DNA of 64,000 bases. Origin: Hydrolagus colliei (lineage: Eukaryota). Shown in pieces: positions 17,653-64,000 of the stretch. Numbering within the stretch: the stretch's first letter is position 1; each line of letters opens with the position of its first letter. The stretch lies in NCBI GenBank assembly GCA_035084275.1, contig CM068752.1:13082001-13146000 (forward strand), read 5' to 3'. The notes beneath the pieces were generated by a model. It ran no database searches, was not told where the DNA came from, and worked only from the letters and a program-made list of their open reading frames with translations. Made by a program: the position numbers and the translations under genes.

Positions 17653-18198
17653 CAACAACAACAACAACAACAACAACAATTTACATTTATAGAGCGCCTT
17701 TCACGTCGGGAGGACGTCCCAAGGCGTTGAACAGGAGGCGTGTGACCCGAGCTGGGAGGGGAGTGTTTGGGAAGGGGTGAAACACGAAGGGGAGGTAAAA
17801 GAGTTCGGGGTGGAACAAAAGGCACGATCGAAGAGGAAAGTCTTCAAACCGGCCTTGAAAGAGGAAAGGGAAGAGACGAAACGGAGGGATTGAGGGATGG
17901 CATTCCATAAGGTGGGAGCGGAGAAACTGAAGGCCCGGCCTCCGATGGTGGGGCGGTTTGGGCGGGGGGCTTGGAGCAGGCCAAGTCCTGTTGAACGGAG
18001 GGTTCGGGTGGGCGTGTAGGGGGAGAGTAGATCGGTTAACTAGGATGGGGCAAGGCCGTGTAAGGCCTTGTAGGTGAGGACGAGGATCTTAAACTCGATC
18101 CTCTGGAGGATGGGGAGCCAGTGGAGACGGGCGAGGGTGGGGGTTATGTGGTCGCGGAGGCGGGTGCGGGATAGTACACGGGTTGCAGAGTTTTGGAT
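17653..18198 (-). mobile_element. Young L2 LINE 3' fragment in the paralogue A 3' UTR
   Basis: Near-identical to 37218-37730, (CAA)9 tail. The orthologous site in B (~44350-44365) is empty. Confidence 0.9.
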
Positions 18199-18770: not shown

Positions 18771-18968
18771 TTATTTTACTCGCAAAGTGGAATAAATAAT
18801 TTGTTCTGAATCATATTCTGCTGGTTTCAGTGCCTCTGCCTGTTTAGTAAACTGGATGGCAGAGTACACCAAACAGGCTTCAGAATCCTCGTCAGCATTC
18901 TGAGATGCATTCACTGCTGGCTGCTTGCACTCCTCTTCTGGCTCAGCACCTCCACGCCTTGCTTTTGG
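18771..18968 (-). CDS. Paralogue A terminal exon with ITIMs LVYSAI and IIYSTL
   Basis: ctaac branch point, aaccag acceptor, 65 codons plus TAA. Confidence 0.88.
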   Translation of the reverse strand, partial: PKARRGGAEPEEECKQPAVNASQNADEDSEACLVYSAIQFTKQAEALKPAEYDSEQIIYSTLRVK

Positions 18969-20558
18969 CTGGTTAATCATAGCAGAGTGATTGTTAGACG
19001 TTATGTAGATGTGAAGACAAAATTAGTTATTAAAGGGGATGATAAAACATATTTCTTGGCACACAGGAAGGTGAGAATATTAAATGGTTTGCCACAAACC
19101 ACAAAGTTTCAAAAATTAATTAATTGCTTGAGAGGCAGGGCTATTTCAGGACACTATCCAACTGAACATCAACAAGATGGAAGCCATACTCTTTCACATC
19201 TGTCAACATCTTCTATCCTTTGGCTCTGACCTCCCCATCCTCCTTGGCGTTTTGCTAAGACTTACCAAATCTGTGCGTAACTAGTCATCAGGTTTGACCC
19301 CCAGGTTTCCTTCAACCCCCACATCTGGTCCCTAACTAACTTTCCTCCATCTCCTTCAGATTGCATGCTGCACACTATTCTCACCATCCTGTGTGCCAAG
19401 AAATATGTTTATCATCCCCTTTAATAACCAATTTTTGTCATTTCAGTCCACGACTGTTTGTGGGACACTGATATGCACAATTGGCTGTTGCATTTCACCC
19501 ACAAATATACAGTCAATTCACTTTACAGTATAGTCTGTGAAGCTCTTTGAGATGTCTAGAAGACATGAAAAGCACAATATCAAAATGCAAGGATTATTAT
19601 TATTATTGATGGCCCCTGGGTTTGGTCTCCCCCACAAGTAGAAACGTCTTTTCATTGTCTACCCTATCAACCCTTAATTTTAAAGACCTGTATTAGGACC
19701 CCCTTATCCTTCTTTTTCAAGAGAAAGGAGACCAAGCTTGTCAGTCTTTCCTGATAGGTATAACCTTGCAGTTCTAGGACCATCCTTGTAAATCTCCTTT
19801 GCACCTTCTCCAGCCCTTTTATATCCTCTCTATAATATGGTGACCAGAACTATATTCTCACGCACACTAAACTTACACCCTCATCTCACCACTCCTCATA
19901 AGGTTTGAGTAGCTCAGGGTCATAGAACAGATCGAGTTCAAGATCCTCTCACACATCTACAAATCCCTTCAGCCCCTGACCTCATCTTTCTGACCTAATT
20001 TCTCCTCACTCCACTACCCGCTGCCATCACTCAGCTGGCTATAGCTGCCAGCTTGTCTTTCGTCCCTTTGGCACCACCATTGATGGAAGCACTTTCAGTC
20101 AGTAGACCTGAAGCTTTGGAACTATCTGCACAATTCCTCTACTTCGCCATCTCCTTCCTCTCTTTTACGCTTTGAAACCCCATCCTACAACACCTTCGCC
20201 TTGCTCCCTCCCTTGCTTCCTTCAAGGCCGGTCTGAAGACCCTCCTTTTCGACCGTACCTTCAGCCGCTCGCCGACCCTCATCCCAACACTGCCCCCACC
20301 CTCCCAATGCTCGGTTCCTGACCCCCTGACTGTTCAGAGCACTGGGACATGCTCCACATGAAAGGCTCTCTACAAATGTAATATTTCTGTTGTTGTTTCA
20401 GATCACAACAGAAGACCTTCCTTCTCAACTGTACTTATGGTTACCTCCATCTTCCACTCTGCTTAGCCTCAGACTTTGCTAAGCGCACCAAGACATTGCC
20501 TGCCATTAATTGGGCTAATATAAAGCACAATGTTTTATGTTATTTAATATTGATTCAC

Positions 20559-20750
20559 CTTTATGTTACTATATATACTTTCTTCCTCATCTGGATTAGC
20601 TGCTTTGGAATGCTCTGGCTTGTTGTGGATGGAGAAACCATCCAAAAAATTGTCTCCTGGCTCCTCCTTAGTTGGTGCCGATGTTCCCATGACATTTTCA
20701 CAGTTACACTCTTCCTTGTGTTTGTTGTCCTCTTCAATCAACCGGTCATC
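20559..20750 (-). CDS. Paralogue A cytoplasmic exon 2 with ITIM-like SIYSNI
   Basis: 192 nt, phase 0-0, DDRLIEE...EESIYSNIK. Confidence 0.85.
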
Positions 20751-21384
20751 CTGCCAACAACATAATAATTACAATCTTTCTATACAGGGAAATATAAAAC
20801 AGGCATGTTGAGCGCTGAAAGGGCCATTCAGCCTTTGTCTGTGTCACACTACTGGTTCTCTAAATTGCCCTGTTTTGAAAATTATTCCAACTTTCCAGCT
20901 CTTTCTCCCTTAATATTTTCATTGCTCGGGTGCTTATCTAATTTCCTTCTGAACAATTCTACTAATCCAACCTAAAAGGACCACTTGTCATAAAGAGCGC
21001 CAGATCTTATCAACAACACCCTTGACTTATGCCCTTTATGCTGGGTAGCAACTCAGAGCGCTTAACAATAGTGGAGCTTGATAACGCGCCAGGGGGAGAG
21101 GTAGGTGGCTGATTGAAGGAGATGGTCTTCGGGTATAATGTGAACATGAACAAGGAGGTGCAGAGATTCACGCAGAGACTTGCAGAGTCTGTTTGAATCA
21201 ATCTAATGGTTGCTCATTTCACCTCACTGATCTGATGAGGAACCTTTGTGTATAGTATAATATTGTATTGTCAACTATCCTTCAAACTTTACATCTGGTT
21301 TTCACTTCTCTAGCATATCTCACCTTGCCAACGTTTCTTGCCACTGCCAGTATTTCTACCCCCAGGCTGCTTCGACCCTTATTC

Positions 21385-21865
21385 AACAACAACTTCAATT
21401 TATATAGTGCCCTCCACACTCGATGGTATCTCAGCGCTTCACAATAATGGATCCTGGGCCAGGGAGAGGGGGAAAAAGGTGATCGAAGGCGTGGTCGAAA
21501 AGAAGGTCTTCAGCTGAGACCTGAAACTGGGAAGAGATGGGGGCAAGACAAAGGGATTGAGGAAGGGAATTCCAGAGCTTCGGGGCATAATAGCTGAAAG
21601 CATGGCTGCCGATGATGGAGCGGAGGAATCGGGGGACAAGGAGGAGACCAGAACCAGAGGAACAAAGGCGACGGGTACTGTGTTGGGGAGAGAGGTCAGA
21701 GAGATAGCAGGGTACAGAGGGGTGGAGAGACTTGAAAACAAGAGTGAGGATCTTGAAATTGACAGGGAGCCAGTGAAGTCTGGCAAGCACTGGGGTAATC
21801 GGGGAGCGAAGTTTGGTGCAGGTGAGAACGCGAGCGGCAGAGTTCTGAAACATGCGTTCATCTAC
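21385..21865 (-). mobile_element. L2 3' fragment
   Basis: FQNSAARVL...LHWLPV...LWNSLP in ORF 21431-22189. Confidence 0.8.
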
Positions 21866-22381
21866 TTCAGGTTCGACTATTCCAATGCTCTGTTCACTGT
21901 ACTTTGTAGCGTAGGTCCTCTTCTGGGCTAGGAACTGTGAGCACATTACTCCCAGCCTCACATACCTCCACTGGGTCCGTATCTCCAAGTGAATCAAGAA
22001 TCTTATCCTCGCATTCAAATGCCTCCACTGCCTTGCTCCACTACTTCCGTGACTAACTGTCATCCTACTGCCCCCTCTAATGCACCTGAGGCATGTCCCC
22101 TGCCATCCCCTATCCGCTAGTGGTGGGTGAGCTTTAGCGCTGCCCCATTTCTCTGAAGTTCTATTCCAGAATCCTCTATTCCAGGTCAATCAGAGTACTG
22201 TACTTCACTCATGGCTCTTCTGACAACAGCTAATTCAGCATAGACCACAAAGAATCACAGGAAAGGAGTGACTATCACTGCTCAATGATAGACCGATCAG
22301 TGCATTTCACTCTGAGCCACTGAGAGAGAGAGAATCCACCTCAATTATTTAACAATTAAAATGAGTAACATCTTCACATAC

Positions 22382-22443
22382 CTGAATGGAATTTGGAAAT
22401 TTATGGACCTTCATGACTTGGGAATCATCATTTAGCTGTTTGA
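22382..22443 (-). CDS. Paralogue A cytoplasmic exon 1 (IKQLNDDSQVMKVHKFPNSIQ)
   Basis: 62 nt, phase 1-0, ccatcag acceptor, GTATGT donor. Homologous to 50119-50180. Confidence 0.8.
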
Positions 22444-22862
22444 CTGATGGAATAAAACAAAATTATTGGTACTTTTAGTTTAGGATTGACCATTGAGCAA
22501 GATTGAACAAAGCAATTTGCAAGAACAAACGTAAATGACGTACAAACGTACAGTAATTAATTTGGATGATTGTGTCATATTTATTGTTATTGGGAACTTG
22601 CCCATATTGTCAGTTGCTGTTATATAATGACATGAAAATCAGTAATAATAAATGTAAGGATTATTGTTAATAATAAGGATTATTACTGTGGTCTCAATGG
22701 GTGAGGGATTGAACGCAGGATTTTATCAGGTAATTAACTAAGCCAAGCTGCCACTTTGGTTGAGCAGAATCGAAGTGCCGTCAGTGTGTATATATAAGTT
22801 TCATCAGATATTGGTCTGAGTTCTGTAAACATGGGTATAGAAGAGTGATAGACAAGACTTAC

Positions 22863-22964
22863 TTTGGTTTCGTTGTTTTATACAAAATGCTAGTACCACA
22901 GTCAAGAGAAGGACCAAGACTAGATTAACTCCGACAGTTATTAACAGAAATTTTCCTGGTTGAC
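22863..22964 (-). CDS. Paralogue A transmembrane exon (CQPGKFLLITVGVNLVLVLLLTVVLAFCIKQRNQ)
   Basis: 102 nt, ggcag acceptor, GTAAGT donor, hydrophobic stretch followed by basic residues. Homologous to 50473-50574. Confidence 0.88.
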
Positions 22965-23204
22965 CTGCCAATATAAATAGTTCTGATCAACACACTTATA
23001 GCAAAGCTTTGTAGAAATAAGATTCTAAGGATTATTATTATTTTTATTATTATATTATGGATTAATAAGGGCCAACACGGTACTAACACAACAAGGACAA
23101 CAACAAAATTATATTTGTATAGTGAGTGCTTTGAGTACGATAATGTTGGCAAATATATTATAAACAAAAATGCATAAAAAGGCCAACTTCCAAGTCATCA
23201 GATC

Positions 23205-23545
23205 ACTACAAAACCAACAAATTACATTTATAGAGCGCGTTTCACATCGGGAGGATATCCCAAGATGCTGAACAATCATGTGTTGAGGCCCGAGCATGGG
23301 GGACAGGCAAGGTAGGGATGTATGGAGGGAGAGAGGTTGGAGGGTGGCTGCAGGCATGATTGAAAAGGAGGGTCTTGAGACTGGCCTTGAAGTAAGCAAG
23401 GAGACTGTGGGATTGAGTTCCAGAGTGTGTGGGCAGAGAGACTGAAAGCCCAACCGTTGATGGTAGGTGGGTCGGGCGGGAGGGAGGGAGACATTAGCGG
23501 ACCGGAGCCCGCTGAACGGAGGGGCAGACAGGTTGGCAGAGTTGC
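23205..23545 (-). mobile_element. L2 3' fragment
   Basis: ttacatttatagagcgcg...ggaggatatcccaag tail motif. Confidence 0.7.
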
Positions 23546-25626
23546 TACCTTCCATGTGAGGGACAAGAAGCGCCCCTTTGCGAACTGGTGTCAAAGGTTT
23601 TTGTTGCACATAACGCACAGTAATTATTTCTGATCAGCCGGGTATATGACATATGCAAAAACTCATCTCCATGTTTACTATCTAAACTAGACATGTATAC
23701 CCCACTCAGCTGGAAATTTCTTGGTATCTGGAATGAAATGTTCACTATTAGAAGGGAGAAGGAAGTGTCACTTCAACAATCTTCCAGATAAGTTGTTTGG
23801 GACATTGGGACAATGACTGCAGACAAATTGAGTCATTTAACAAATGACAGTGACAGTGATGTGCTTCATACCCAGTTAAATACAGTATAATGTATAGGTC
23901 TAATTTGCAGATTTCTTAACGGAATTTACTTTGTAAGGAATCTGAGGTTTACAAGTCAAGACTCCTTTCAGCTATTGGAAATAAGGCGCACAAGCTCCTG
24001 GGAACTCCAATTGGATCCACTTCCAGAGCGGTTTTCACTGGGTCATCGAGAATTCTAACAGGATTTCTTAATATGGAATCTAGTTAGAAATGAGGCTGCA
24101 GTGTTACTATAACTTAGTGAGATACGTTCCAACAATCCCTTCAGAGCTACCTTAAGTGGGCCTACCTTAAATGTGCCACTCAATGACCTACACCATTTTT
24201 GCTGCACTTCAATTAACTTGATTGATAAATAGCTCTGAACAGTTACTTACTCTGGTTTGGCTTTGGTTTGCAGTAAGCCTCTGAATGCGCACGACCATAT
24301 TTATTCTCAGCTTGACAAGAAACACACAAGCCTTCTAATTCATGCATAGCCAGGCTGCTCATAGACTTAGTATCATCGATTTGGGTTGTTCTGTTAGTCT
24401 TGGATTCAGTTAGTTTCCAAATGATGTTTGCCGGAGGGTTGGCATCTGCGACACACTTGTAATTCAGCCCATCGTGACTAACGTTAACTTCACTGGGTCC
24501 ATCTGTAAGTGGGAATTAACAAATATTTAAATCATATTTTTCCCTCTGACCCTTATTTTCAGCCTTTTTCCCTCCTCTCCTTGGACCATTACTGAGAATG
24601 CCTGTAAATACAGTGAAATCTGCTGAACCACCGCTTAACCCTGGACACAGGGAAAATCGAACAAAACGCTCAACTCAGATTCATTTATATACTTCCCTGT
24701 ATTAAATATGTTGGTTAATTTGGACAGATATCCGGTTCATTCCAGTCTGGTCATTGTGGGATGTACTCACTTGTGCCTTCTGTGTGGAGACTTGCTCCTG
24801 GATCATTTATTTTAGGGACTTTCTCAGGCCTAGAGTTAGTTAAATAGAGAAATGATTTGATCTAACATGATTGTTGTGGATGATGCAGGCTGTATGGCCC
24901 ATCCGATCTGATCCCTCCAGAACCCTTAACCTACCATTCTCTTTATCAAGTTGTTATTTAAATGAGTCCAAGGTTCTTGCCTCGACCACCTTTCCTGTCA
25001 TTGATATTTCCTGTCATGAAGTCCTCAAGCTCAATTGTTCAGCATGCGCCTCGCAACCTGGATTTGATTCCCAGCCGGGCAAAACTGTGTGCAAGTTTCC
25101 TTACTACACACACCTTACAATACACTTTGCTCTCGACACAAAGTATGGCCAGAATCAATCCATGTTCCATAAGTTTTGAGTAATAGCAAAGTAAAAGTAA
25201 TAGCAAAGCAAAGTAAAAATATCAATAAAGTGAGAAATAATTAAAGAATGCATTGGTCTGCACATTGTTTCTAAATAAGACCAAATAATTTAGAACATGT
25301 GATGCAAGCATGAAGCAAGAAAGTAGAGTAAGCATTTAGGATGAACTTGTTAGTTTTGACTTATGATTATTAATAATGATATACTGTGAATGTTGAATTA
25401 TGTGTCTGATGTACGTAAAACTGTTGGAAAATATTTCTTATGAACAAATAAGAATCATAAAATGTTCAAAATAAGTTGGAGTTCGAGTGCAGTGAACGAG
25501 ATGGAGGAGAAAGGTATCAATTTACATTATTTACAGTGTTAAAGTGGGTTTACGTTTGTAACCACTTGAGAGCTGTCTGTAAGATTCTGTAATTAATGTG
25601 TTAAATAATATCTCAAATTAGATTAG

Positions 25627-25657
<31 letters not shown>

Positions 25658-25660
<3 letters not shown>

Positions 25661-26020
25661 TAAATTCCCGTTTATCCGGCACGCTATATGGTGCGTCGAC
25701 TAATTGACTAATTGCTGGATAATCGGATGGCAAGTTGCTGAAAACTAACACACAAAAAAACTTATTTTAAAACATACCATATTAATAATACACTAAATTG
25801 TAACAGAATATTGTATGGTTACTTACCAATAAAGATTCCAACACACTCGGTAAAAAGATCGGTAAAAAAGCATTTTTTACCGATCGGTAAAAACCTCCAA
25901 GTTTGTAAGTTTAATAAGTACGCAAAGTGAGCACACTCGCGATTGCTGGAATGGAGAATTGCCCCGGGAAGGGGTAGAGCAATCCGGTTGATCGGGTCAC
26001 GGATAAATGGGCTTTTACTG
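25658..26020. mobile_element. Tigger/pogo-like MITE adjacent to a (TA)n run
   Basis: TIR cagtaaattcccgtttatccgg / cggataaatgggcttttactg, same terminal type as 13199. (TA)n at 25630-25657. Confidence 0.72.
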
Positions 26021-26654
26021 TGCATACATATTAATTGTACAACATTTGTGTCAGTCCTTACATCACACAGAACATACAGTTCAAGATCTTGGTCCTCACC
26101 TTGAAAGCCCTCCATGACCTTGCACCCTACTTCTGCATCCTCCTAAACCATACCATCCTGCTCACTCTCTCCACTTAGCACTCTCTCACACACCCAATCC
26201 TGATGACCCCAGCTCTAGTTCAAAATGTCCCCCCTACGTGAAAAACGCAATACAAAAATGTAATTTTGCTATTGTTGTTGTACATCCTCTTGTACACTAT
26301 CTTGGTGATTTCTAAACTATTGGGTTTCTTTTTCAATTCCATTTATAACTGCATACACCTCTTTAAAATTCTCTATGAAGCATTTTCCTCTCAGGACTGA
26401 AGAGCCCTAATTTAACTTGTTGGTGGCTCATACAACAACAAAATTAAATTTATAGAGTGCCTTTCACATCGGGAAAACGTACCAAGGTACTGAACAGCCA
26501 GGTCGGGACTCGAGCACTGGGGAAGGACAGGGTACGGTGAATTTAAACTATTTGTTGTTCATAACACATTCCTCTAACACTGGAGATTTCAGTGGACTCC
26601 AGCCTTTCACAAGTGGCTGGAGTTGGGCTGCCAATTAGGAGGAGGAATAATAAG

Positions 26655-26985
26655 GGAGGGAAATAGCTCAGTGGTTAAAGCAATCACCTTACAACGTGAG
26701 ACCTGTGTTCAAATCCAGACAGGCAAGGGCAAAATCTTGGGCAAGTTTACTTACTCCACATGCCTTATTCCTTACTCCACAATAATAATCCCTCCAAAAA
26801 AAAACAATAATAAAATTGGTCATTTCAATCCAAGATAAATTGTGGGACACTGCTGTGTGCAATTGGCTGCCACGATTCACCCACAAATATAGTCAATTCA
26901 CTTTCCAGTTTAATCTGTGAAGAGGTTTGAGACGGCTAGAAGACACGAAAAATGCTATATCAAATGCAAGGATTATTATTATCAT
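26655..26985 (+). mobile_element. tRNA/Deu SINE
   Basis: tagctcagtgg A box, gttcaaatcc B box, Deu core, tail caaatgcaaggattattatt. Confidence 0.8.
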
Positions 26986-27174
26986 GATTGATTGACAGCT
27001 GGCAGCAGCTTGTGAATAGGCTTTCGATCACTTAAACACTACCACTAATTGGTCCCCTTCTCTGCGGTGCAATACAGCTTCTATGTTATTTGGGAAGGAA
27101 TTTCGTTAAACTGGGGCACCTCGTATGTCGGGCTGTCCATATTCCACTCAGGAGCCATTATGCCAAATACTCAC

Positions 27175-27450
27175 ACTTGACATTGATGTCAACTGCAAAG
27201 GTATCATTTCCTTGTGAATTATTTACCACACAGGTAAAGGTTCCTGAAATCTTTCTGGAAATTGTTCTGAACAACAGGACTCTGTCTGTACTTTTGAGAG
27301 TTTCTGTTGTGTTTGCGTCTCTTTTTGTTTTGTACCAGGTGTAAGTAGCTTGAGGGTAACTGTCAGTGCTGCATGTCAACGTCATATTTTCAATCCCCTC
27401 AATGATTTCCAAAGATCCATTTATATGAACTGTTGTATTTTGGGGGGCAT
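27175..27450 (-). CDS. Paralogue A C2-set Ig exon
   Basis: 276 nt, phase 1-1, YAPQNTT...LTC...YTWY...SGTFTCVVNN. Confidence 0.9.
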
Positions 27451-28430
27451 CTGAAATGTGGAGAGAATTGTGTTGGAAGCAGCCATGATATTGACAACAT
27501 GGTGGTATAAGCCATGTGATGATATAAGACAGTGTTTTATTATCAGGAGTTCACTTTACATTGTTCCAGGCCATTAGAACCTCCCCCATTATGATTGATT
27601 CCCTCACATTATCTGTCAGTTGTGTCTTGTCCCTGTAAGTATGCTGGGGTATCATCCATCCCAGGGGTTTTGTTGGCTTTGTGCCCCTCGAGCCTCTCTA
27701 GAATCTCAGCCTCACTTATGTTGAATTCCAGGAGCTCAAACAAAGCTGAATGTGGGGGGATCAAGTATATTGTATTGTCCTCCCTAATTCATACTCCCAG
27801 GAAGTAAGTATTTAATATGTTTCCTATCCCCCATTCATTCACATTGAGTTGATCTTTTGGTGATGGGAAGTTTAGAGATTTGGTGGTAAAGTTTGGGATT
27901 TAATTTAACTTCGGGTTGTTCTAATCAGATGGCAGCACATCCCTCCCAGTAAGTTGGTTCCTTTTCCAGACAAAATCGTAACGTTTGACTGTATTTTGAA
28001 AAGAGGACAATTTTGGAATCCCTGAAGTGGCTTCTATCTTATTTTTTTTAAAAAACAAAACACATGCAGAGGGAGGGCAAAATCTGTGTTCTCCCTGACT
28101 AAAAAACAATGAACATTTTACTTATTGGTTGCACTGGTTGTGAGGCCCCCATGACCTAACCTGCCACACATGACAATCATCAAAAATCAAATACTTTGTT
28201 CCATGATAGAAATTCATTTAACGACTCTCTTGTACAAACACTGTTGGGGGTAAGTAACAGACAATGAAGGTTGACCAGAAGGCTCTCTATCAATGCAATT
28301 TGTGTGTTTGTACTTGGGAGCAAAATGCTGAAAGCAGGCAATTACTGCTAAAGGCAGGTCAGGTAGTAAAACTTGAGAACTTTCTGTAGTTTGGAATCAT
28401 TTGAACGCTGCTTCAGAATGGGTAACTCAC

Positions 28431-28733
28431 ATTTTATCTGAAGTGTTATGTTGCCTTGTTTGGAATATTGGTGGTTAGGAGAACTGACCACACATTTGAT
28501 CAGCTTGAGATGATCTCTGTATGAGGGGATAAAAGTGAATGAACTGGTCAGGACCCGGTTAGATACAGACTGTTTTTCCTCAGTCACGGTTCCCTGCTTT
28601 GTCAGCTCAGTGATTCCTTCCCAGGTCAGCTTGGCTCTGACCTGATCATCAATATTAGAGGAGGAACATGATAAAGTGGTGCTGATCCCCTCAGTCACTT
28701 CACTTGGGAAGACATTGGGGTTGCCAGGACGAC
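28431..28733 (-). CDS. Paralogue A Ig domain 2 exon (Siglec D2, C-type)
   Basis: 303 nt, phase 1-1, TLSCSS...LTW...SSFTFIPSYRDH...IKCVV. Confidence 0.9.
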
Positions 28734-28883
28734 CTAACAAAAGGAAACAGAAATAAACAATGTTCAAAATTGTCACCTGGTCAAAATTGGAACCTGTAAA
28801 TACTGGATAAAAACACCTGCAAACTTGTCTGTCTGTCTGCTGGTTTGTCAAATATGTAACAATAAGTGAGAATGAATATTTAC

Positions 28884-29237
28884 CATACACCACGACATTG
28901 ATGGGATGTTGTCCGTTCCATCTATTGAAATCCTGGATCTCAAACCTGAAGCAATAGTCACCAGAATCAGCTTTATTGAGGTTGTTTATCTCAGTTGAGC
29001 AGTTTTTGTTTTTCAGATTTCCTGTTAATTTTATTCTGTTGTATCTTTGGGGCTGGCTGCTTTTATACACCAACGTCGCTTGAGAATTGCATGGTCAACC
29101 TTTGAACCATTTGCCGATTATATTATATTGTTCATTCGGTGGGTCAGGGTGTTTGAATGAACATTTCAGAATCACAGACTCTCCCTCCAACCCAGCAGCA
29201 GAACTGGAAAACGAGACTCCCCAATCATCGGTAGAAG
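28884..29237 (-). CDS. Paralogue A V-set sialic-acid-binding domain exon (interrupted by TGA)
   Basis: DWGVSF...LKCSF...GKWFKG*PC...KNCSTEI...DSGDYCFRFEIQDFNRW resembles sialoadhesin WGVS...YNFRFEIS..NRW. The essential Arg codon is at 28945-28947. Confidence 0.9.
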
Positions 29238-30915
29238 CTGTGGAAGAGGAAACAGATGGACTGGGGTGACTCCATTACTGATTAATAATAATAATAATCA
29301 AATGTAATACACGGCAGGGTGGTAACTTTCTGCCAGGCCACTTCTTTACAAAGATTTGGAAATCTTAGCATGAGATACACTACGATGTAAAGTTACACAA
29401 AATGTATTTAAGTTGCCAGAAGCCTGACATTCCACCATAACACAGGAATTGTGGAACAGCAACACAACAACCGTGGAGGGGAGCAGACACATGGGCAGGA
29501 CATGACACCCCTCTTACAATCACCCCCCCACCCCCCCACACTGGCTCTGACCATCAGGAGAGTCCAGCCCCAGTCAGTGGGTTGACATCATCACCTCGAG
29601 CCTCCTCCCTGAGGTACCAGTGGCCACTACAATAATTCCTGCTGAGATGTGTGGCTCACAGTGAGTATCTACCATCCACCTAGTCAGAGCTCAAACCCAC
29701 TCTAGTCAGATGTTGAATGACCAACTAGTGATTATCCTCCTTGGATGGGGATGTTAAACAGGGTCTGTTTGCAATGAAAGGTTATAATTTATGTCGGTCC
29801 ACGATATTCTGAGCACTGCAGATGACAGCACAGCCAGCCCGGCTCATTAGCAGGATTTGGAAGTGCAGACCAATAACTGGGGGCAGGGAGTCATCCCACT
29901 CAGCTCTTGTTAAGAGTAATTTTGTTGTTGTTAACAGTGCAAGCCCAAGTCATAATGGAAGGTTGGCCCTGGTCAGATAGCGACATCAATGGCATGCTAT
30001 GCGTTGTTTGCTGGTTAGGCTGCAGCTATACCCGAATCCGCACTCTGGGGTCCCCAAGTCTTGGCTCTTGCCAACCTGCGCCTAAACTGTTTGGGAGTTA
30101 GGTAAGCAGGATGCATCCTCCTGGGAGATAGTACACATTCCATTGCAACAATCTATCTGTGGGATTTTCACATGTAGGTGGGATGCATGGAAATCTCAGC
30201 ATCATTTGGATACTCTTTAAGAATGGTGATGCGTTTCTGCAAGTGTCAGATATCCGGCTGACCAGAAGAGGCGAGATGAGTGTCCCTGAGGCAGAATTTA
30301 TTCTGATAGGAGGAAACCAAGTTGAACAGTCTATGTAGCTCATCGATGAGATATGGAGCTGTAGACATGCCATTAACACCATGAGCCAAAATACTAATAC
30401 AATTACAATATTATGTGGTTACCATGTATTAATATACCCTTTACTAAACTCCATACACCCATCACGCCAGTTCCAACACAGCTCCACTTGCTCCTTATCG
30501 CAGAACAACATCAAGATCCTCACACTCGTTTTCAAATCTCTTCATGCCCTGCCACTTCCTTGTCTCTCTGACCTGCTTACTCCCTCATCCGCTAACTGCT
30601 GACTCTAGCCTCATGCATGTCGCATGCGCTCATGCCTATTGCCGCCACCTCATCCCCCCATCTCAGTGTGGCGCTCCACTCCTCTCAAGCACTCTGGGAT
30701 ACTGCCCGGTGTGAGGGGAGCTATAGAACTACAAGTTGTCATAGTTATTACTGAGGCTCACCGGCCCAGAAGCTCACACTATGGGAAACAAGATCAGCCT
30801 CAAGGTTCATCACTTCTTGATGACAGAGGGTTCCTGTGAAAAGCTCACGCACATAGTTAGTGATTACCATTGATCTAAAGCTTAGAGATAATGGTGGTAA
30901 AGGGTGGAACCTTAC

Positions 30916-30967
30916 CCTGGATGAGACACACCAACTGCAGTGCCAGGATGCAGTGAGAGGCACTCAT
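30916..30967 (-). CDS. Paralogue A signal peptide exon (MSASHCILALQLVCLIQ-A)
   Basis: ATG follows a ctctccag acceptor (exon starts 30982). Hydrophobic core, phase-1 GTAAGG donor joining the V exon in frame. Confidence 0.85.
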
Positions 30968-37217: not shown

Positions 37218-37730
37218 TTATCCCGCACCTGCCTCCGTGACCACATAACCCCCACCCTCGCCCGTCTCCACTGGCTCCCCATCCTCCAGAGGATCGAATT
37301 TAAGATCCTCATCCTCACCTACAAGGCCTTACACGGCCTTGCCCCATCCTACCTAGCCGATCTACTCTCCCTCTACACGCCCACCCGGACCCTCCGTTCA
37401 ACAGGACTTGGCCTGCTCCAAGCCCCCCGCCCGAACCGCCCCACCATCGGAGGCCGGGCCTTCAGTTTCTCTGCTCCCACCTTATGGAATGCCATCCCTC
37501 AATCCCTCCGTTTCGCCTCTTCCCTTTCCTCTTTCAAGGCCGATTTGAAGACTTTCCTCTTCGATCGTGCCTTTTGTTCCACCCCGAACTCTTTTACCTC
37601 CCCTTCGTGTTTCACCCCTTCCCAAACACTCCCCTCCCAGCTCGGGTCACACGCCTCTTGTTTAGCGCCTTGGGACGTCCTCCCGACGTGAAAGGCGCTC
37701 TATAAATGTAAATTGTTGTTGTTGTTATCC
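37218..37730 (+). mobile_element. Young L2 LINE 3' fragment, possible 6-bp TSD ttatcc
   Basis: Open RT C-terminal frame ([26 protein letters not shown]...), (GTT)n tail, ttatcc at 37218-37223 and 37725-37730. Confidence 0.9.
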
Positions 37731-45022: not shown

Positions 45023-48000
45023 CTGGTTAACCATAACAGAGTGATTGTTAGAATTGATGTAGATGTGAAGTCAAAATTGGTTATTAAAGGGGATGTTAAA
45101 ACATAATTCTTTGCACACAGGATGTTAGAATACTAAATAGTTTGCCACAAAGTTTCTAAAATTAATCAATAACTTGAGAAGCAGGGCTATTTCAGGACAC
45201 TATCCAACTAAACATCAAGAAGATTTAAGCCATACTGCTTGGCATCTGTCAATGTCTTCTCTCCCGTGGCTCCAACTTCTCTTTTCAAGAGAAAATGTGT
45301 CTAGGCTTTCCTGATAGGTATAACCATGCAGTTCTAGTACCATCCTTGTAAATCTTCTTTGCACCTTCTCCAGTCCTTCCATATCATTTCTATCCTATGG
45401 TAACCAGAACTGTATTCTCATACCCTAACACTGAGCTCATACCCTCATCTCACCACTCCTCACCAGGCTCCACCAGCTCAATGTCATGGAATGGATCGAT
45501 ATCAAGGACTTCTCATACATCTACAAATCCTTTCAGCCACTGTTACCTCCCCTCCTTTCTGATCTACTTTCTCCCCACTACACTACCCACTGCCTCCACT
45601 TGGCTGGCTAGGGCCGCCTGCTTGTCCCTCGATACTTTGCATCATCATCGGCGGGGACACTTTCATTCACTGCATCTAAGGCTTTGGAACTATCTTCCCA
45701 ATCCCTCTGCCTTGTCATCTCCTTCCCTTCTTCTAGATCTTTGCCACTGTTAAGTGCAAGGAGACACTGACCCATATGAACTGTGCTATATAAAACAAGT
45801 TATTTTTGTTGATTCACCTCAATGGTACTATATATGCTTTCTTGCTTGTCTACTTTGGCTGGTTCGGAATTCTCTGGGTGGCTGGAGATGCAGGAATCAT
45901 GCAGCAAATTTTCTCCAGGCTCATCCTTAACTGTTGCTGACATACCCATCATATTTTCATACTCATGCTCTTCCTTGTTGTCAACTTCAATCATCCGGTT
46001 ATCCTGTCAACAGCATAATAATTACAATTCTTCTCCAGAGAATTATGAAACAACAATAACAAAAACAAAATTACACTTGTTGTTCAAGGACAATCTTGTC
46101 CTGCTCGTCAGGAGGACTTTCCAAGGTGCTGGACAGTCATTGTTTCAGATACAAGTTGGGGTCGGGGATGGCGAGGGAACAGGGAGGGTTTGGGGTGACT
46201 GATGGAAACCATTGAAGAGGAGAGTCTTGTGGATAAAGGGGTTAAAGGATGTTGGGATAAGGCGGGTAAGGTGGAGTTAGAATAGATCAGTCATGATCTT
46301 ATTGAATGGCAGGGCAGGCTCGAGGGGCCGAATGGCCTACTCCTGCTCCTAATTCTTATGTTCTTATGTCTTGAGGTAGGTATTGAAGGAGGCTAGGCAT
46401 AGGGCAAGGCAGAAGGATTGTGGGATGGAGTTCCAGAGATTTGTGGCAGAGTGGCTGAACGCTCGCCTGCCAGTGGCGTGGCAGGTGGGTCGGGGGACAT
46501 GGAGCAGGCCGGAGCCTGCTGAACAGAAGTGGCAGGCAGGTTAGTAGGGGGTTACGAGATTGCAGAGGTAGGGTGGGCTGAGGCCATGGAATTGAATGCT
46601 CTGGATGGGGAACCAATGGAGTCGGGCAAGGATGGGGGAGACGGGGTCATGGAGCGGTAGAGGACATGGGCTTGAGTTCTGTACTGTCTGCAGCCTATGG
46701 AGGGAGGAATTGGGAAGGCCAAAAAGCAGCAGGTTGGCATAGTCGAGCCAGGATGTAATGAAAGTGTGAATGAGGGTTTTAGCAGCCTGAGGGATGAGGT
46801 AATGTCAGAGTCAGGCAATATTGTGGAAGTGAAGGAAGGCAGAGAGGGTCTTGTTGGCATTAAAATGTAGAAAGTTAACTCTCATCCAGGACTTGATGTC
46901 TGACAGGGAGTCAGTGAGGACAAGGAGGCAGAGAGAGCCCTGATCACAGATGTGAAACCAGGCATATTATGCACTGAAGGGGCCATTTAACCTTTGTCTC
47001 TGTCAGACCTGTTTCTCTAAATTGCTCAGTTTTGAAAATATTCTCACTTTCCAATACTTCTCCCTTAATGTTTTCATTACTCAGGTGCTAATGAGTGCCC
47101 AAGTTTATCAACAACACCCTGCACTTATGCTGGGTAGCATATCTGAGCACTTCACAGTGGTGGACAAACCAGGAGAGAGGCAGATGGCTGGTTGAAGAAG
47201 AAAATCTTCAGATGGAACATAAACATGAACAAGGAGATGTAGAGATTTAGGCAAAGAGTTGAAGAGTAAATAGTGGCTTAAGAATTCTAAGAGAATAATA
47301 ATAACCCTTGCATTTGATATAGCAGTTTTCACCAATATGAAACAATATACATATATAGCGCTTTTCACATCTTATCGACGTCTCAAAGCACTTCACAGAA
47401 TACAATATACTGTAAAGTGAATTGACTGTATATTTATGGGCAAAGATATTCATTCTAAGATCTCCCTGAGCCTCTCAATCTCTTGTTCTGGTGAAAACAG
47501 CTCCCAGTTTATCCAGCTGCTCTTCATATGTTTATTGTTTCATACTGGTATATCTTTTTGGTGAATCCCACAATGGGAAGCCCAAAATTGAACACTTTGC
47601 TCCAACTGCAATCTAACCAATGTCCTATAGTGTTCCAACGTAACTTACATATGTCCCATTTGACTTCTTGATAGCTTTCTGCACCTTGCCCACCACTTTT
47701 AATATACAATGGAAGCCATTTAACCAGACTTCGCTTAACCCCAGATGCCAAGTAAATTGAATAAAACCACCCATCCCAGATTCAATTGTATCCCTATCCG
47801 ATTTAAATGTGCTGGATAATTCATACACTGTGTCTGGGTAATCCAGACAAAATACCTTTCTAATCACTACTGAATGTACTCACTCACATCTTCTATGTCT
47901 CCAACAGCTCTATTCAGCCTCAAGAAGCTCCAGGACACAGATGGGAGGAGTCAAATTGCTATTGATTGACAGCAGACTCCAACGATTCACAAGCAGTTCG

Positions 48001-60000: not shown

Positions 60001-62435
60001 GGGAAAGACAAGGTAGGGTGGAGGGGAAGGACAGAGGTGGGAGGGCAGCAGAAGGCACGATCAAACAGGAGGGTCTTGAGACCGGCGTTGAAAAAGGCAA
60101 AGGAGGAAGTGAGGTGAAGAAACTGTGGGATGGAGTTCCGGAGTTGGGGGCAGAGAGCCTGCAAGCCCATCCACCAATGCTAGGGCCGGTTGGGCAGGGG
60201 ACATGGAGCAGACTGTAGCCTGCTGAACCGAAGGGGTGGGCATGTTCATAGGGAGACAGCGGGTCAGAGAGATAGGAGTGAGGACGAGGATCTTGAATTT
60301 GATCCTCTGGAAGATGGGGAGTCAATGGAGCGCATTTTTCTAACACTGGTGATTATCAGTGGACTCCACCTATTCACAAGTGGCTGAAATTGGCCAGTGA
60401 GGAGGAGGTATAAGGAAGAATAAGGGAGGGTAATCACAGCCGCTTATGAATGGGCTGTCAACCAGCTCAGCACCAATTGGTTCACTTCCCTTCCAATGGG
60501 AATGCTAACTAGTACCTCCGCTCCACTGTTGGTTGGGAAAGTATTTTGGTTAACCACAGACACCTCTTAGGTCGGACAAAACAGCGGTCCCTGATATGTC
60601 TGGCTTAACCAGCTCCCACTGTTTACATCAAGATCCAGAAGAACTCTCACTCTAATGTGTTATAATCTACCCAGGAATGGTTAAAGCCAAATACTCACAC
60701 ATGACGTTGATGTCAGCTGCACTGGTGTCATTTCCCTGTGAATTATTTACCACACAGGTAAAGGTTCCTGAATCCTTTTTGGATATTGTTCTGAACAACA
60801 AGACGCTGCCTGTACTTTTGAGAGTTTCTCTTGCGTTTGTGTTTCTTTTTGTCTTGTACCAGGTGTACGTAACTTGAGGGTAACTGTCAGTGCCGCATGT
60901 CAGCGTCATATTTTCAATCCCCTCAATGATTTCCAAAGGTCCATTTATATGAACTGTTGTATTTTGGGGGGCATCTGAAATGTGGAGAGAATTGTGTTGG
61001 AAGCAGCCATGATATTGACAACATGGTGATATAAGCCACATGATGATATAACAGTGTTTTATTATCAGGAGTTCACTGTACATTGTTCCAGGACATTAGA
61101 ACCTTCCCCATTGTGATTGATTCTCTCACATTATCTGTCAGTGGTGTTTTGTCCCTGTAAATATGCTGGGGTATCATCCATTCTAGGGGAATAGTTGGCT
61201 TTGAGCCCTTTGAGCCTCTGTAGAATCCCATGCAGAAGGAGGGCAAAATCTGTGTTCTCCCTGACTAAAAAAAAGGACATTTTACTTATTGAGTATCCTC
61301 GTTATGATGCCCCCCATGAAGTAACCTGCCAGGCATGATGATCATCAAATCAAGTACAGTACTTTGTTCCATGATAGAAATTCATTTAACACGACTGTCT
61401 TGTACAGACACTGGTGGGGTAAGTAATAGAAAATGAAAGTTGAATTAACAGAAGGTACTCTATCAATGTAATTTTGTTTGTTGTTTGTACTTGGGAGCAA
61501 AATACTGAAAGCAGGCAATTACTGGGAAAGGCGGGTCAAGTGGTAGAACAGAACCAACACAAAACCTCTTGAGACCTTTCTGTACAGTTTGGAATCATTA
61601 GAACGCTGCTTCAGTATGGATAACTTACATTTTACCTGAAGTGTTATGTTGCCTTGTTTGGAATATTGGTGGTTAGGAGAACTGACCACACATTTGATCA
61701 GCTTGAGATGATCTCTGTATGAGGGGATAAAAGTGAATGAACTGGTGAGGACCCGGTTAGATACAGACTGTTTTTCCTCAGTCACGGTTTCCTGCTTTGT
61801 CAGCTCAGTGATTCCTTCCCAGGTCAACTTGGCTCTGACCTGATCATCAATGTTAGAGGAGGAACATGATAAAGTGGTGCTGATCCCCTCAGTCACTTCA
61901 CTTGGGAGGACATTGGGGTTGCCAGGACGACCTAACAAAAGGAAACAGAAATAAACAATGTTCAAAATTGTCACCTGGTCAAAATTGGCACCTCTAAATA
62001 CTGGATAAAAACACCTGCAAACTTGTCTGTCTGTCTGCTGGTTTGTCAAATATGTAACAAGAAGTGAGAAGGAATATTTACCATACACCATGACATTGAT
62101 GGGATGTTGTCCGGTCCAAGCATTGAAATCCTGGATCTCAAACCTGAAGCAATAGTCACCAGAATCAGCTTTATTGAGGTTGTTTATCTCAGTTGAGCAG
62201 TTTTTATTTTTCAGATTTCCTGTTAATTTTATTCTATTGTATCTTTGGGGCTGGCTGCTTTCATATACCAACGTCGCTTGAGAATTGCATGGAGAACCTT
62301 TGAACCATTTGCCGATTATATTATATTGTTCATTCGGTGGGTCAGGGTGTTTGAATGAACATTTCAGAATCACAGACTCTCCCTCCAACCCAGCAGCAGA
62401 ACTGGAAAACGAGACTCCCCAATCATTGGCAGAAG
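44825..62435 (-). CDS. Siglec-like paralogue B (CD22/sialoadhesin-like inhibitory receptor), V-C-4xC2-TM-3 tail exons; leader exon lies beyond the window
   Basis: join 62082-62435, 61629-61931, 60699-60974, 56854-57129, 54952-55227, 53095-53370, 50473-50574, 50119-50180, 45818-46003, 44825-45022. All GT-AG, phases compatible, no internal stops seen. Confidence 0.88.
45818..46003 (-). CDS. Paralogue B cytoplasmic exon 2 with YENM and SIYSTI
   Basis: 186 nt, phase 0-0. Confidence 0.85.
46045..46900 (-). mobile_element. L2 fragment with a nested plus-strand CR1 3' tail (~46228-46350)
   Basis: L2 motifs in ORFs 46356-46616 and 46552-46860. Tail gggccgaatggcctactcctgctcctaattcttatgttcttatg. Confidence 0.7.
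48163..48705 (+). mobile_element. 5'-truncated non-LTR (L1/Tx1-like) 3' end with a perfect 17-bp TSD
   Basis: acctttgggctgctact at 48146-48162 and 48706-48722, T-rich 3' UTR, A-rich end. Confidence 0.6.
50119..50180 (-). CDS. Paralogue B cytoplasmic exon 1 (RKQPKNDSQAMMIDEFSNSNQ)
   Basis: 62 nt, phase 1-0. Confidence 0.8.
50473..50574 (-). CDS. Paralogue B transmembrane exon (CWSDNLLSISIGGIVVLVLLLTVMLVYCIKRLNQ)
   Basis: 102 nt, phase 1-1, GTAAGT donor. Confidence 0.88.
53095..53370 (-). CDS. Paralogue B C2-set exon d
   Basis: 276 nt tandem duplicate, open. The intron upstream of the acceptor is replaced after about 20 nt. Confidence 0.87.
54740..54858 (+). mobile_element. Penelope-type short repeat with a hammerhead-like core
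   Basis: CTGACGA-agggtcatggacct-GAAA followed by ctccatagatgctgcctgacctgctgagt. Confidence 0.6.
54952..55227 (-). CDS. Paralogue B C2-set exon c
   Basis: 276 nt tandem duplicate, open, same splice sites. Confidence 0.9.
56854..57129 (-). CDS. Paralogue B C2-set exon b
   Basis: 276 nt tandem duplicate, open, same splice sites. Confidence 0.9.
57820..57935 (-). mobile_element. Second copy of the Penelope-type short repeat
   Basis: Reverse complement of the 54740 element with a more decayed core (CAGACAA...GAAAC). Confidence 0.6.
58500..58795 (+). mobile_element. tRNA/Deu SINE (degraded)
   Basis: tagctcagg head, gtgggaccctactgtgtgctattggct core, caaatgcaatgattatt tail. Confidence 0.65.
58810..59810 (+). 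mobile_element. L2 RT and 3' fragment
   Basis: YLDDTQLY, FLQLNV, SRLDYANS. The 3' part is shared with paralogue A at ~26040-26270. Confidence 0.8.
59900..60325 (-). mobile_element. L2 3' fragment
   Basis: (CAA)n tail. A remnant is present at the orthologous site in A (~26415-26535). Confidence 0.78.
60699..60974 (-). CDS. Paralogue B C2-set exon a
   Basis: 276 nt, ttctctccacatttcag acceptor, GTGAGT donor. Confidence 0.9.
61629..61931 (-). CDS. Paralogue B Ig domain 2 exon
   Basis: 303 nt, 3 aa differences from paralogue A. Confidence 0.92.
62082..62435 (-). CDS. Paralogue B V-set domain exon (intact)
   Basis: 354 nt. SANDWGVSF...KGSPC...DYCFRFEIQDFNAWTGQH. Essential Arg codon at 62143-62145. 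Confidence 0.92.
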
Positions 62436-62599
62436 CTGTGGAAGAGGAAACAGACAGACTCCATTACTGGTTGCCCGAGGACTAATAATAATTCTATGGA
62501 ATACCAGGCAGGTGGTATCTTTCCGCACTGTCCCCTTCTTTAGGAAGATTTTTAAACAAAGGCATCATCGTCTAACAGATATGCTAATATGTAAAGTTA

Positions 62600-63312
62600 T
62601 CTCCGCATCTCAGGACTGACAACATCAGCATTCGAGGCTGCTCTCTCCACCTCTCGAAGCCAGTCAGGAATCTGGGCACCTTGTTTGACCCTGAACTGTC
62701 CTTCCTCTCTCATACAGGTCGATTATGGGAACTCTCTCCTTGATGGCCTTCCCAGCTCCTCCCTTCACAAGTTGCAGATGATTCAGAATTCTGCAGCTCG
62801 TGTACTCTCCCGCAAGAGGCTCCGTAACCACATCACTCCCACCCTCGCCCATCTCCATTGGCTCCCCATCTCCCAGAGGATCAAATTCAAGATCCTCACC
62901 TTCAAGGCCATTCACGGTCTCGCCCCCATCTATCTCTGTGACCTGCTGTCTCCCTATCAGCCTGCCTGTCCCCTCCAGTCAGCAGGCTCTGGCCTCCTTG
63001 CCCTAACTGCCCTACCATCAGCGGCCAGGCTTTCAGTCTCTCTGCTCCCACACTATGGAACTCCATCTCGCAATCCCTTTGCCTCACTTCCTCCGTTTCC
63101 TCCTTCAAGGCTGGTCTTAAGACCTTCCTCTTCGAGGGGAGCCTTTTGCTCCCCTCCAAACTCTTCACCCTCTCCTACTCTCCTTCCCCTTCCCCGTACT
63201 CCAACCTCCCCACCCCCCGCTCGGGTCCCAACCTGATTGTTTAGGGCCTTGGGATGTCCTCCCGACATGAAAGGCGCTCTATAAATGTAATTTTGTTGTT
63301 GTTCTTGTTGTT
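62600..63312 (+). mobile_element. L2 3' fragment in the leader-V intron of B
   Basis: DYGNSLL.GLP...QMIQNSAARVL...LHWLPI, (GTT)n tail. Absent at the orthologous site in A. Confidence 0.85.
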
Positions 63313-64000
63313 ACAAGAAATGTATTTAAGTTGGCAGAAGCCTGACATTCCACCATAACACAGGAATTGTGGAACAGCAACACAACAACCGTGGAGGGGA
63401 GCAGACACATGGGCAGGACATGGCACCCCTCTTACAATCACCTCCCATTAAGCCAGTCCAGCCCCAGTCAATGGGATAGGATCATTATCATCTCCTTAAA
63501 AAGATGCAGGTTCACTCCTCGAGCCTCCTCCCCGAGGTCCCAGTGGCCACTACAATAATTCATGCTGAGATGTATGGCCCACAGTGAAGCTCACAGAGTA
63601 TCTACCATCCGCCTTGTCAGAACTGAAACCCGCTCTAGTCAGATGCCGAATCACCGAAAGTAATTATAGTGATTACTCTCCTTGGGGCCGGGGGAGTGGG
63701 GGAAACGGATGGTAAACAGGTTCTATTTGGCAATGAAATGTTCGAATAGAGCCAGCCCTTTGTTGTTGTCTTATGAGTCCAGTTCTTGAGCTAGGCAGGT
63801 CCACAGTATTCCAGGCACTGCTGATGACAGCACAGCCAATCTGGCTCATTGCAGGATTTGGAAGGGTAACCAGTCACTGGGGCAAGGAGTCATCCCACTC
63901 AGTTCCTGTTAACAGTGCAAGCCAATGTCCTAACAGGTAGGTTGCCATTGATGTACCAGACAGGAACATCAATGGCAAGCTATGTGGTTTTAGCTGGTTA

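Follow-up and report, generated by a model that had tools for sequence, protein, structure and literature searches.

How can two neighbouring genes be nearly identical in the exons for their first two extracellular domains, and in the intron between these exons, and yet be no more alike than their introns in the exons for the membrane-spanning part and much of the cytoplasmic part? The question is raised by a stretch of 64,000 nucleotides (nt) from the genome of Hydrolagus colliei (assembly GCA_035084275.1, contig CM068752.1, positions 13,082,001 to 13,146,000), referred to here as the window, in which two Siglec-like paralogues, A and B, lie in tandem on the reverse strand. Both have a V-set immunoglobulin (Ig) exon (V), a second Ig exon (D2), one or more third-domain exons (D3), a membrane-proximal Ig exon (Dm), a transmembrane exon (TM), two tail exons (t1 and t2) and a terminal exon. 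The interval 61629-62435 consists of the V exon, a 150-nt intron and the D2 exon of copy B, and its counterpart in copy A is found at 29237-28431, 33.2 kb apart. In both copies the V and D2 exons have canonical GT-AG splice sites and phase 1 boundaries. An earlier note, made from the sequence alone, had proposed that a recent conversion tract homogenised ligand recognition while signalling output diverged, as in the paired Siglecs of primates. It is very probable that gene conversion homogenised the V-intron-D2 block of A and B; the part of the proposal that concerns signalling fares less well.

The divergence mosaic and its explanation

The divergence between A and B is a mosaic that exceeds chance and for which constraint is an inadequate explanation. 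Comparison of the window with itself shows a tandem duplication of at least 13-21 kb, with copy A at ~16.8-30.0 kb and copy B at ~43.1-64.0 kb, and the duplicated units are mostly 67-83% identical. The main tract (A 28380-29256, B 61575-62454), about 0.88 kb long, is 97% identical, with 27 mismatches in 877 columns; these differences are scattered, and two of them are multi-nucleotide. Its span takes in the V and D2 exons and the 150-nt intron between them, with ~20 nt of intron 1 on one side and ~50 nt of the D2-D3 intron on the other, so that the limits first proposed (A ~28400-29260, B ~61600-62460) were essentially right. The two copies differ at 13/354 nt in V, 4/150 in the V-D2 intron and 6/303 in D2. 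Identity in 100-nt sliding windows is 96-100% over A 28407-29256 and 65-88% on either side. The near-identity of the 150-nt intron (146/150) and the greater divergence of the intron upstream of V (147/181 identical, 81%), both remarked on in the earlier note, are confirmed. The D2-D3 intron is 89% identical and the Dm-TM, TM-t1 and t2-terminal introns are 81%, 78.5% and 78.6% identical, respectively; overall, A and B are 72-84% identical in the introns that flank the tract and in the genes' 3′ half.

Measured as divergence per segment (K), the V exon, the V-D2 intron and the D2 exon are at 0.02-0.04, and intron 1, Dm, TM, t1, t2 and their introns are at 0.22-0.30. Synonymous divergence (dS) between A and B is 0.055 in V and 0.044 in D2, against 0.33 in Dm, 0.34 in TM, 0.22 in t1, 0.35 in t2 and 0.15 in the terminal exon. 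Uniform dS, which the earlier note had named as the outcome that would refute it, is thus not observed (0.044-0.055 vs 0.22-0.35). The encoded proteins differ at 7 of 117 residues in V (six replacements and one stop codon) and at 3 of 100 in D2, and share 18/34 residues in TM, 10/21 in t1, 33/62 in t2 and 56/65 (86%) in the terminal exon, which reproduces the counts reported earlier, with t2 as 33/62.

The excess over chance was measured by a Sawyer-type permutation, in which the match and mismatch columns of the 4892 aligned A-B columns were shuffled 2000 times. The best fragment, A 29256-28380, has a score of 580, compared with a null maximum of 117 in the 2000 shuffles (P<0.0005). The V-D2 intron, with its 4 differences in 150 nt, stands apart from the other introns (444/2471; Fisher P=2e-8) and is more alike than its two neighbour introns alone (P=1e-4).

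A history with no exchange, in which A and B are of uniform age and the block is preserved by purifying selection or by a conserved intronic element, agrees with the expectation that exons exceed introns in conservation and with a ratio of non-synonymous to synonymous divergence (dN/dS) of 0.3-0.5, below 1, in V and D2. However, A and B resemble each other as closely at synonymous sites and in the 150-nt intron as they do at replacement sites. The outgroup, the locus L001 of Callorhinchus milii, aligned three ways with A and B, provides a further measure. The V exon, the V-D2 intron and the D2 exon are 16-23% different from C. milii, and V is the least conserved domain between the species, with an amino-acid identity to C. 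milii of 59-61% vs 95% between A and B. The V-D2 intron is ~82-84% identical to C. milii, and its conservation between species does not exceed that of the exons. Constraint therefore does not explain the block, and a history with no exchange is barely credible.

The distances tell the same story along the gene. In the main tract, the distance between A and B (dAB) is 0.034, while those from A and from B to C. milii (dAC and dBC) are 0.197 and 0.188, giving a ratio of dAB to outgroup distance of 0.18; in intron 1 and in the 3′ part of D3 this ratio is 0.8-1.0. In 3′ non-coding DNA, insertions and deletions make some of the three-way alignments poor (e.g. in the 250 nt upstream of t2), so distances are taken from the pooled DNA alone; they are much the same for all three pairs (dAB 0.278, dAC 0.281, dBC 0.288). 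Outside the homogenised parts, then, A and B separated at about the same time as the species did. Trees by domain, with elasmobranch homologues from an exhaustive HMMER search as outgroups, disagree on the grouping of A and B. In the V+D2 tree A and B form a sister pair (support 100/98) whose terminal branches measure 0.02 and 0.01, whereas in the Dm+TM+tail tree A groups with C. milii (88/89) and B falls outside.

A single unequal crossover, which would make a hybrid gene with its 5′ part from one copy and its 3′ part from the other, would account for the gradient of identity from head to tail; the tandem arrangement favours such an event, and the genes differ in how many D3 exons they have (1, 4 or 6). 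In intron 1 beside V, however, dAB is 0.28, and further upstream it is 0.16, which is baseline. A block bounded on both sides needs a double exchange, that is, conversion. There are also two shorter patches. One of these is made up of the end of the D2-D3 intron and the 5′ part of the D3 exon, and its core (A 27560-27380) has a dAB of 0.028 vs 0.135-0.14 to C. milii. The other lies in intron 1, is not conserved with C. milii (dAC 0.185, dBC 0.228) and ends at a repeat insertion in B. In both, the A-B divergence is ~0.03-0.04 vs 0.13-0.23 to C. milii, and between the patches the divergence is at baseline or intermediate, for example in the 135-170 nt of intron 1 adjoining V. Separate patches of low divergence indicate that the exchange was patchy or repeated, and because they are separated by baseline segments a single crossover cannot give the pattern; we regard it as extremely unlikely. 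The terminal exon was also tried as a separate conversion tract and rejected (score 58, P=0.35), its outgroup ratio being unremarkable.

The near-identity could also be produced by the assembly, if V-D2 of one copy had been collapsed, chimeric or cross-polished. The tract is short and bounded near exon ends, and no reads stand behind it, all of which would suit an artefact. The 27 mismatches in the 877 columns are nevertheless spread along the block, and derived changes are found on both copies (15 A-derived and 8 B-derived in 829 columns). The window has no gaps and no N, and the difference of at least 20% around the block and the unequal exon number make the copies easier to separate in assembly. 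The independent assembly of C. milii shows a like gradient between its own paralogues. An artefact is thus very unlikely, though not quite as remote as the two preceding explanations.

Gene conversion remains the most satisfactory explanation of the block. In outline, a CD22-like Siglec gene would have undergone a tandem, same-strand duplication at about the time of the split from the Callorhinchus lineage, and most of A and B would then have drifted apart to the ~20-28% difference seen in non-coding DNA. Much later, one paralogue would have been copied over the other by non-allelic gene conversion along ~0.88 kb, presumably through repair of a break templated by the neighbouring copy and without crossover. 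The shorter patches in intron 1 and at the 5′ end of D3 suggest that this exchange was patchy or happened more than once. An alternative source would be a third paralogue acting as donor to both copies.

Siglec character of the V domain

The gene models and the Pfam matches give an architecture of an N-terminal V-set domain, C2-type Ig domains, a single transmembrane segment and a cytoplasmic tail. Pfam places the V-set at residues 37-136, followed by four or more Ig_3/I-set/C2 matches, and Ig_CD22 scores 31.4 bits vs a cut-off of 27. Among solved structures, the best match of V alone is sialoadhesin (E=2.8e-12), followed by MAG, Siglec-7, CD33, Siglec-8, Siglec-5 and CD22, and the Siglecs all outrank any antibody chain; V-D2-D3 together are closest to MAG and CD22. 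An AlphaFold2 model of V, built from 7 sequences, is of moderate confidence, with a predicted local distance difference test score of 73. In a Foldseek search of the PDB with this model the top 14 hits are Siglec V domains, with sialoadhesin first (template-modelling score 0.73) and Siglec-7, CD33 and MAG next.

The residues expected to bind sialic acid are retained. Query W5 aligns to W2 of sialoadhesin and query W106 to W106 (chain numbering), residues that we take to contact sialic acid in the sialoadhesin-sialyllactose structure (1qfo). The Arg of strand F (R97 in sialoadhesin) is kept in the motif YCFRFEI, to be compared with YNFRFEI in sialoadhesin, YYFRGDL in MAG and YFFRME in Siglec-7; it occurs in A and B as well as in C. 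milii and is invariant in the alignment of homologues. This Arg is known to be essential (see also PMC12953582). The Cys pattern is less typical. The Cys of strands B and E are present, with KCSF and NCST aligning to PCIF and VCNL. The inter-domain Cys of Siglecs, before strand B, is a Ser in the sequence here (ESVILKC, vs SCLLIPC in sialoadhesin and TCVSIPC in MAG), and D2 holds two Cys only. Two other Cys, in SPC and YCF, are conserved in CD22-like proteins of shark, ray and teleost. The altered pattern is treated as a variant compatible with membership of the Siglec family. Judged by sequence and predicted fold, the V domain is of Siglec type with the putative Trp/Arg/Trp sialic-acid triad kept, which supports this part of the earlier note.

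The elasmobranch homologues, which are named CD22-like, sialoadhesin-like or Siglec-14-like by NCBI, are 37-45% identical, and the nearest relative is that of C. milii. This and the orthologous synteny bear out the cartilaginous-fish origin that the earlier note had thought probable.

Signalling halves and the stop codon in A

In paired Siglecs, one partner carries an immunoreceptor tyrosine-based inhibitory motif (ITIM) and the other a charged transmembrane residue through which it signals by DAP12, an adaptor with an ITAM (immunoreceptor tyrosine-based activation motif) (PMC13358205). A and B have the linkage of such a pair, being in tandem ~33 kb apart with V+D2 97% identical and conversion supported, but they lack its opposite signalling. 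Both tails are long and carry three ITIM-like motifs, SIYSNI, LVYSAI and IIYSTL in A and SIYSTI, LVYAAI and IIYSTL in B, which has YENM in addition; and no K, R, D or E is present in the transmembrane cores of A and B (FLLITVGVNLVLVLLLTVVLAFCI and LLSISIGGIVVLVLLLTVMLVYCI). With the same three ITIM-like motifs and uncharged transmembrane segments, no opposing signal is expected, and the analogy with paired Siglecs drawn in the earlier note is not supported. As to single motifs, the first ITIM is SIYSNI in A and C. milii and SIYSTI in B, and the YENx motif is CENV in t2 of A (20670-20690), YENM in B (45940-45960) and YENF in C. milii.

The TM, t1 and t2 exons diverge at the intronic baseline, with a dN/dS of ~0.8-1.05. 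When changes are polarised by C. milii, the non-synonymous and synonymous counts are 45.5:13.5 on the A branch and 47:21 on the B branch; the counts for A are suggestively close to neutral and not clearly different from those for B. In addition, the V exon of A contains an in-frame TGA, which is a derived two-base change within the converted tract and the only defect in the A model, since the remaining exons are open and have canonical splice sites. Because of this stop, A cannot encode a receptor in this assembly, and it is either a pseudogene or a null allele. Three polarisable amino-acid changes have occurred in V of A since the conversion and none in V of B, which fits a recent loss of constraint on A. 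The claim that signalling output diverged in a tunable system is accordingly not upheld: TM, t1 and t2 drift at the intronic level, and A is interrupted. To judge from these patterns, the diverged signalling halves look like a weakly constrained remainder that escaped homogenisation, not like the result of directed divergence.

A functional pair maintained by selection, in which conversion keeps recognition the same and signalling diverges as an independently evolved tunable or paired system, would nonetheless explain why the converted block is exactly the ligand-binding module. It also agrees with the open exons and canonical splice sites of A outside V, with the difference in ectodomain length (4 vs 7 Ig exons), with the YENM, YENF and CENV variants of B, C. 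milii and A, with the paralogues of C. milii, which are also alike at the head and different in the tail, and with the frequent occurrence, in primate Siglec pairs, of null alleles in one partner (PMC5701461, PMC13358205). What tells against it is the sameness of the ITIM-like motifs and the lack of transmembrane charge, the intronic rate of TM, t1 and t2, the branch counts, near neutral for A, and the stop in V of A; moreover, intron sequence makes up part or all of two of the three converted patches. On balance a selected pair is unlikely. The same doubt attaches to a pair of a new kind, evolved in parallel in A/B and C. milii, with a shared head, recurrent conversion, different stalks and adaptor motifs and no ITIM-versus-ITAM polarity, in which the stop of A would be a segregating null like those of human SIGLEC14 and SIGLEC16; we consider this improbable.

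Since the motifs of both genes are inhibitory, the sequence outside the converted stretches is near-neutral and A has a stop in V, we infer that the homogenisation followed mainly from tandem homology, as a mechanistic by-product, and does not reflect selection for a matched pair. Several points weigh against conversion as described here and against its being a by-product. The grouping of A with C. milii in the C-terminal tree is only moderately supported and the non-coding distances form a trichotomy, so that duplication and speciation may have come in either order. Polarisation by C. milii gives no donor or direction of conversion, as it has no power when both copies are equally far from the outgroup. 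The tract ends within ~20-50 nt of exon ends, which is tidier than would be expected of a random tract and could be a hint of selection shaping the retained sequence. The comparison of A with B comes from a single assembly, which leaves a small chance of a polishing or chimeric artefact. Finally, the stop in A may represent a null allele that is segregating or, less likely for a two-base substitution, a base-calling error; for this reason the by-product reading is not proven.

The wider locus and comparison with known systems

The gene models (Table 1) were guided by the closest database protein, that of the C. milii gene P0001, and the Dm exon was found only in this way; D3 and Dm are absent from the account in the earlier note. 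The Ig exons number seven in B (V, D2, four copies of D3, and Dm) and four in A. The D3 copies of B are all of phase 1-1 and lie in repeat units of ~1.9-3.8 kb. The open reading frame (ORF) and the donor site of the signal-peptide exon of A are conserved in C. milii (L001 10601-10652). Another candidate leader exon (A 29492-29429, B 63410-63347, MCLLPSTVVV...) was rejected, as elasmobranch homologues show the signal peptide at A 30967-30916 and the candidate is the intron-1 patch. The length of the V-D2 intron (61932-62081 and 28734-28883, reverse strand) is a multiple of three, and neither copy contains an in-frame stop. Retention of this intron would thus add 50 residues without truncation; the open reading through it may be a coincidence.

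Table 1. Positions in the window of the exons of A and B, the shorter patches and the neighbouring features
Feature	Position	Strand	Remark
Gene A, paralogue	18771-30967	-	complete model
A signal-peptide exon (MSASHCILALQLVCLIQ)	30967-30916	-	resembles leaders of elasmobranch homologues (MSTSHCTLALIAVCLIQG)
A V-set exon	29237-28884	-	341/354 nt as in B
In-frame TGA in A V exon	29097-29095	-	TCT (Ser) in B, Asn in C. milii
A V-D2 intron, 150 nt	28883-28734	-	146/150 as in B
A D2 exon	28733-28431	-	297/303 nt as in B
A D3, single C2-type Ig exon	27450-27175	-	
A Dm, membrane-proximal Ig exon	24502-24251	-	found with C. milii protein
A TM exon	22964-22863	-	
A tail exon 1 (t1)	22443-22382	-	
A tail exon 2 (t2)	20750-20559	-	
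A terminal exon	18968-18771	-	
Gene B, paralogue	44825 to beyond 64000	-	first exon past window end
B V-set (Siglec-type) exon, 354 nt	62435-62082	-	phase 1-1, open
B V-D2 intron, 150 nt	62081-61932	-	open in frame, ORF reads through
B D2, C2-type Ig exon, 303 nt	61931-61629	-	
B D3 array, four tandem exons	60974-60699, 57129-56854, 55227-54952, 53370-53095	-	
B Dm, membrane-proximal Ig exon	51483-51235	-	found with C. milii protein
B TM exon	50574-50473	-	
B tail exon 1 (t1)	50180-50119	-	
B tail exon 2 (t2)	46003-45818	-	
B terminal exon	45022-44825	-	
Second fragment, probable conversion	A 27349-27659, B ~60873-61183	-	309 columns, 14 mismatches, P<0.0005
Third patch, intron 1	A 29400-29524, B 63318-63442	-	125 columns, 2 mismatches, P ~0.004
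Interspersed-repeat insertion, ~700 nt, B intron 1	62600-63310		absent from A
Third, more diverged paralogue, 3′ end	1-960 and ~1357-2323	+	opposite orientation to A/B
Arf-family small GTPase exons	5955-6206 and 9255-9617	-	between third paralogue and A

The C. milii locus with the P0001 gene (L001, contig MU249844.1) runs colinear with gene A for more than 30 kb, with an identity of ~70-83%, and the colinearity spans upstream intergenic DNA and the downstream Arf-family neighbour; the segment compared stops near the expected start of the 3′ end of B. Orthologous non-coding DNA is ~20-28% different between the species. P0001 shares the exon plan of V, D2, D3 array, Dm, TM, t1, t2 and terminal exon, with six D3 exons that are nearly identical to each other (L001 16353-23374) and a duplicated t2 exon. 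Its NCBI name is 'hemicentin-1-like', and its NCBI model reads the 5′ exon in a different frame from that of the conserved signal peptide and so is without one. A second C. milii paralogue (P0010, XP_042196016.1, 'myelin-associated glycoprotein-like'; locus L002) is inverted and lies ~27 kb beyond P0001. The two loci are 96-99% identical from intron 1 to D2, 81% around t1 and 87% around the terminal exon, which is a weaker version of the gradient between A and B; this pair differs from A/B in being inverted and more alike overall (81-99%). The sole D3 exon of L002 (12889-13164) has an internal deletion and no GT donor where one is expected, and the second paralogue looks decayed. The D3 tree separates the window's five D3 exons from all those of C. 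milii (100/100), and D3 copy numbers are 1 in A, 4 in B and 6 in C. milii. Taken with the paralogue patterns, this indicates a locus shaped by the duplication of exons and genes, by homogenisation and by decay.

The terminal exon of the third paralogue (~629-768) is without LVYxAI and keeps ITYCNL, and this paralogue matches the P0010 gene by position and orientation. The Arf-family GTPase, which is presumably ARL3-like, is also the neighbour that follows the P0001 gene in C. milii, with an MA3-domain gene beyond. The interspersed repeat found in intron 1 of B has many other, diverged copies in the window. Two of the copies form an inverted pair (17666-18173 vs 37219-37726) of 96.9% identity, which suggests that the repeat was recently active. 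The window also contains a fragment of a reverse-transcriptase ORF of the long interspersed nuclear element type (4754-5572).

Among named Siglecs, CD22 is the closest to B in architecture. B likewise has a V-set and six C2-type Ig exons, against just four Ig exons in A; its domain junctions read YAP/YGP; and its tail has three ITIM-like motifs, YENM, and two ITIMs ~20 residues apart in the last exon, junction and tail features that we take to match those of human CD22. There are also differences. MAG and sialoadhesin outscore CD22 among solved structures; the neighbours, an Arf-family GTPase here and in C. milii also the MA3-domain gene, do not adjoin human CD22; and the first Cys of the Siglec CxxxxC pair is Ser, while copy number and D3 exon count vary. 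The likeness is one of architecture; one-to-one orthology with tetrapod CD22 may or may not go with it.

As to the process, the nearest parallel is found in primate SIGLEC11 and SIGLEC16 (SIGLEC16P), where conversion was shown by tree incongruence (Hayakawa et al. 2017, PMC5701461). There, too, a short tract that takes in the V exon is 97-99% identical between linked paralogues with the remainder less alike, trees of the converted part follow the species and those of the unconverted part do not, constraint on the converted exons is relaxed, and a non-functional partner takes part. However, that pair is inhibitory and activating, whereas A and B both have ITIM-like motifs and no charged transmembrane residue; its tract is ~2 kb long, compared with ~0.9 kb and two small patches here; its baseline identity is 87-93% and not 72-84%; and its members are CD33-related, unlike the holocephalan genes of CD22/MAG/Siglec-1 type. 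Siglec-5 and Siglec-14 (Ali et al. 2014, PMC4042635) likewise lie next to each other and have nearly identical N-terminal Ig domains, a likeness put down to conversion, and a null allele is common in one partner; Siglec-14 opposes Siglec-5 through DAP12, while no opposition is encoded in A and B. Outside mammals, work on Xenopus CEACAM genes (PMC5112662) describes concerted evolution of ligand-binding Ig domains in linked immune-receptor paralogues, in a different Ig family and with inhibitory/activating pairs present. A literature search, mostly of titles and abstracts, turned up no paper that deals with cartilaginous-fish Siglec genes, and a paper on teleost Siglecs does not mention cartilaginous fish.

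The conversion between A and B reveals no new mechanism or receptor logic. Its interest is that Siglec ligand-binding modules, for which concerted evolution has so far been recorded mainly in primates, are now seen to evolve in this way in a holocephalan and in the conserved CD22/MAG/Siglec-1 type. In chimaeras the CD22-like genes form a small, dynamic cluster in which the number of genes varies, the repeated Ig exon occurs 1, 4 or 6 times and at least one copy is in decay; its orthologue is currently hidden under the names 'hemicentin-1-like' and 'myelin-associated glycoprotein-like'. Annotators should take care, as trees made domain by domain mislead on the orthology of these genes. The process is known from primate Siglecs and other immune-receptor clusters; the lineage, a chimaera with a CD22-like Siglec, is new.

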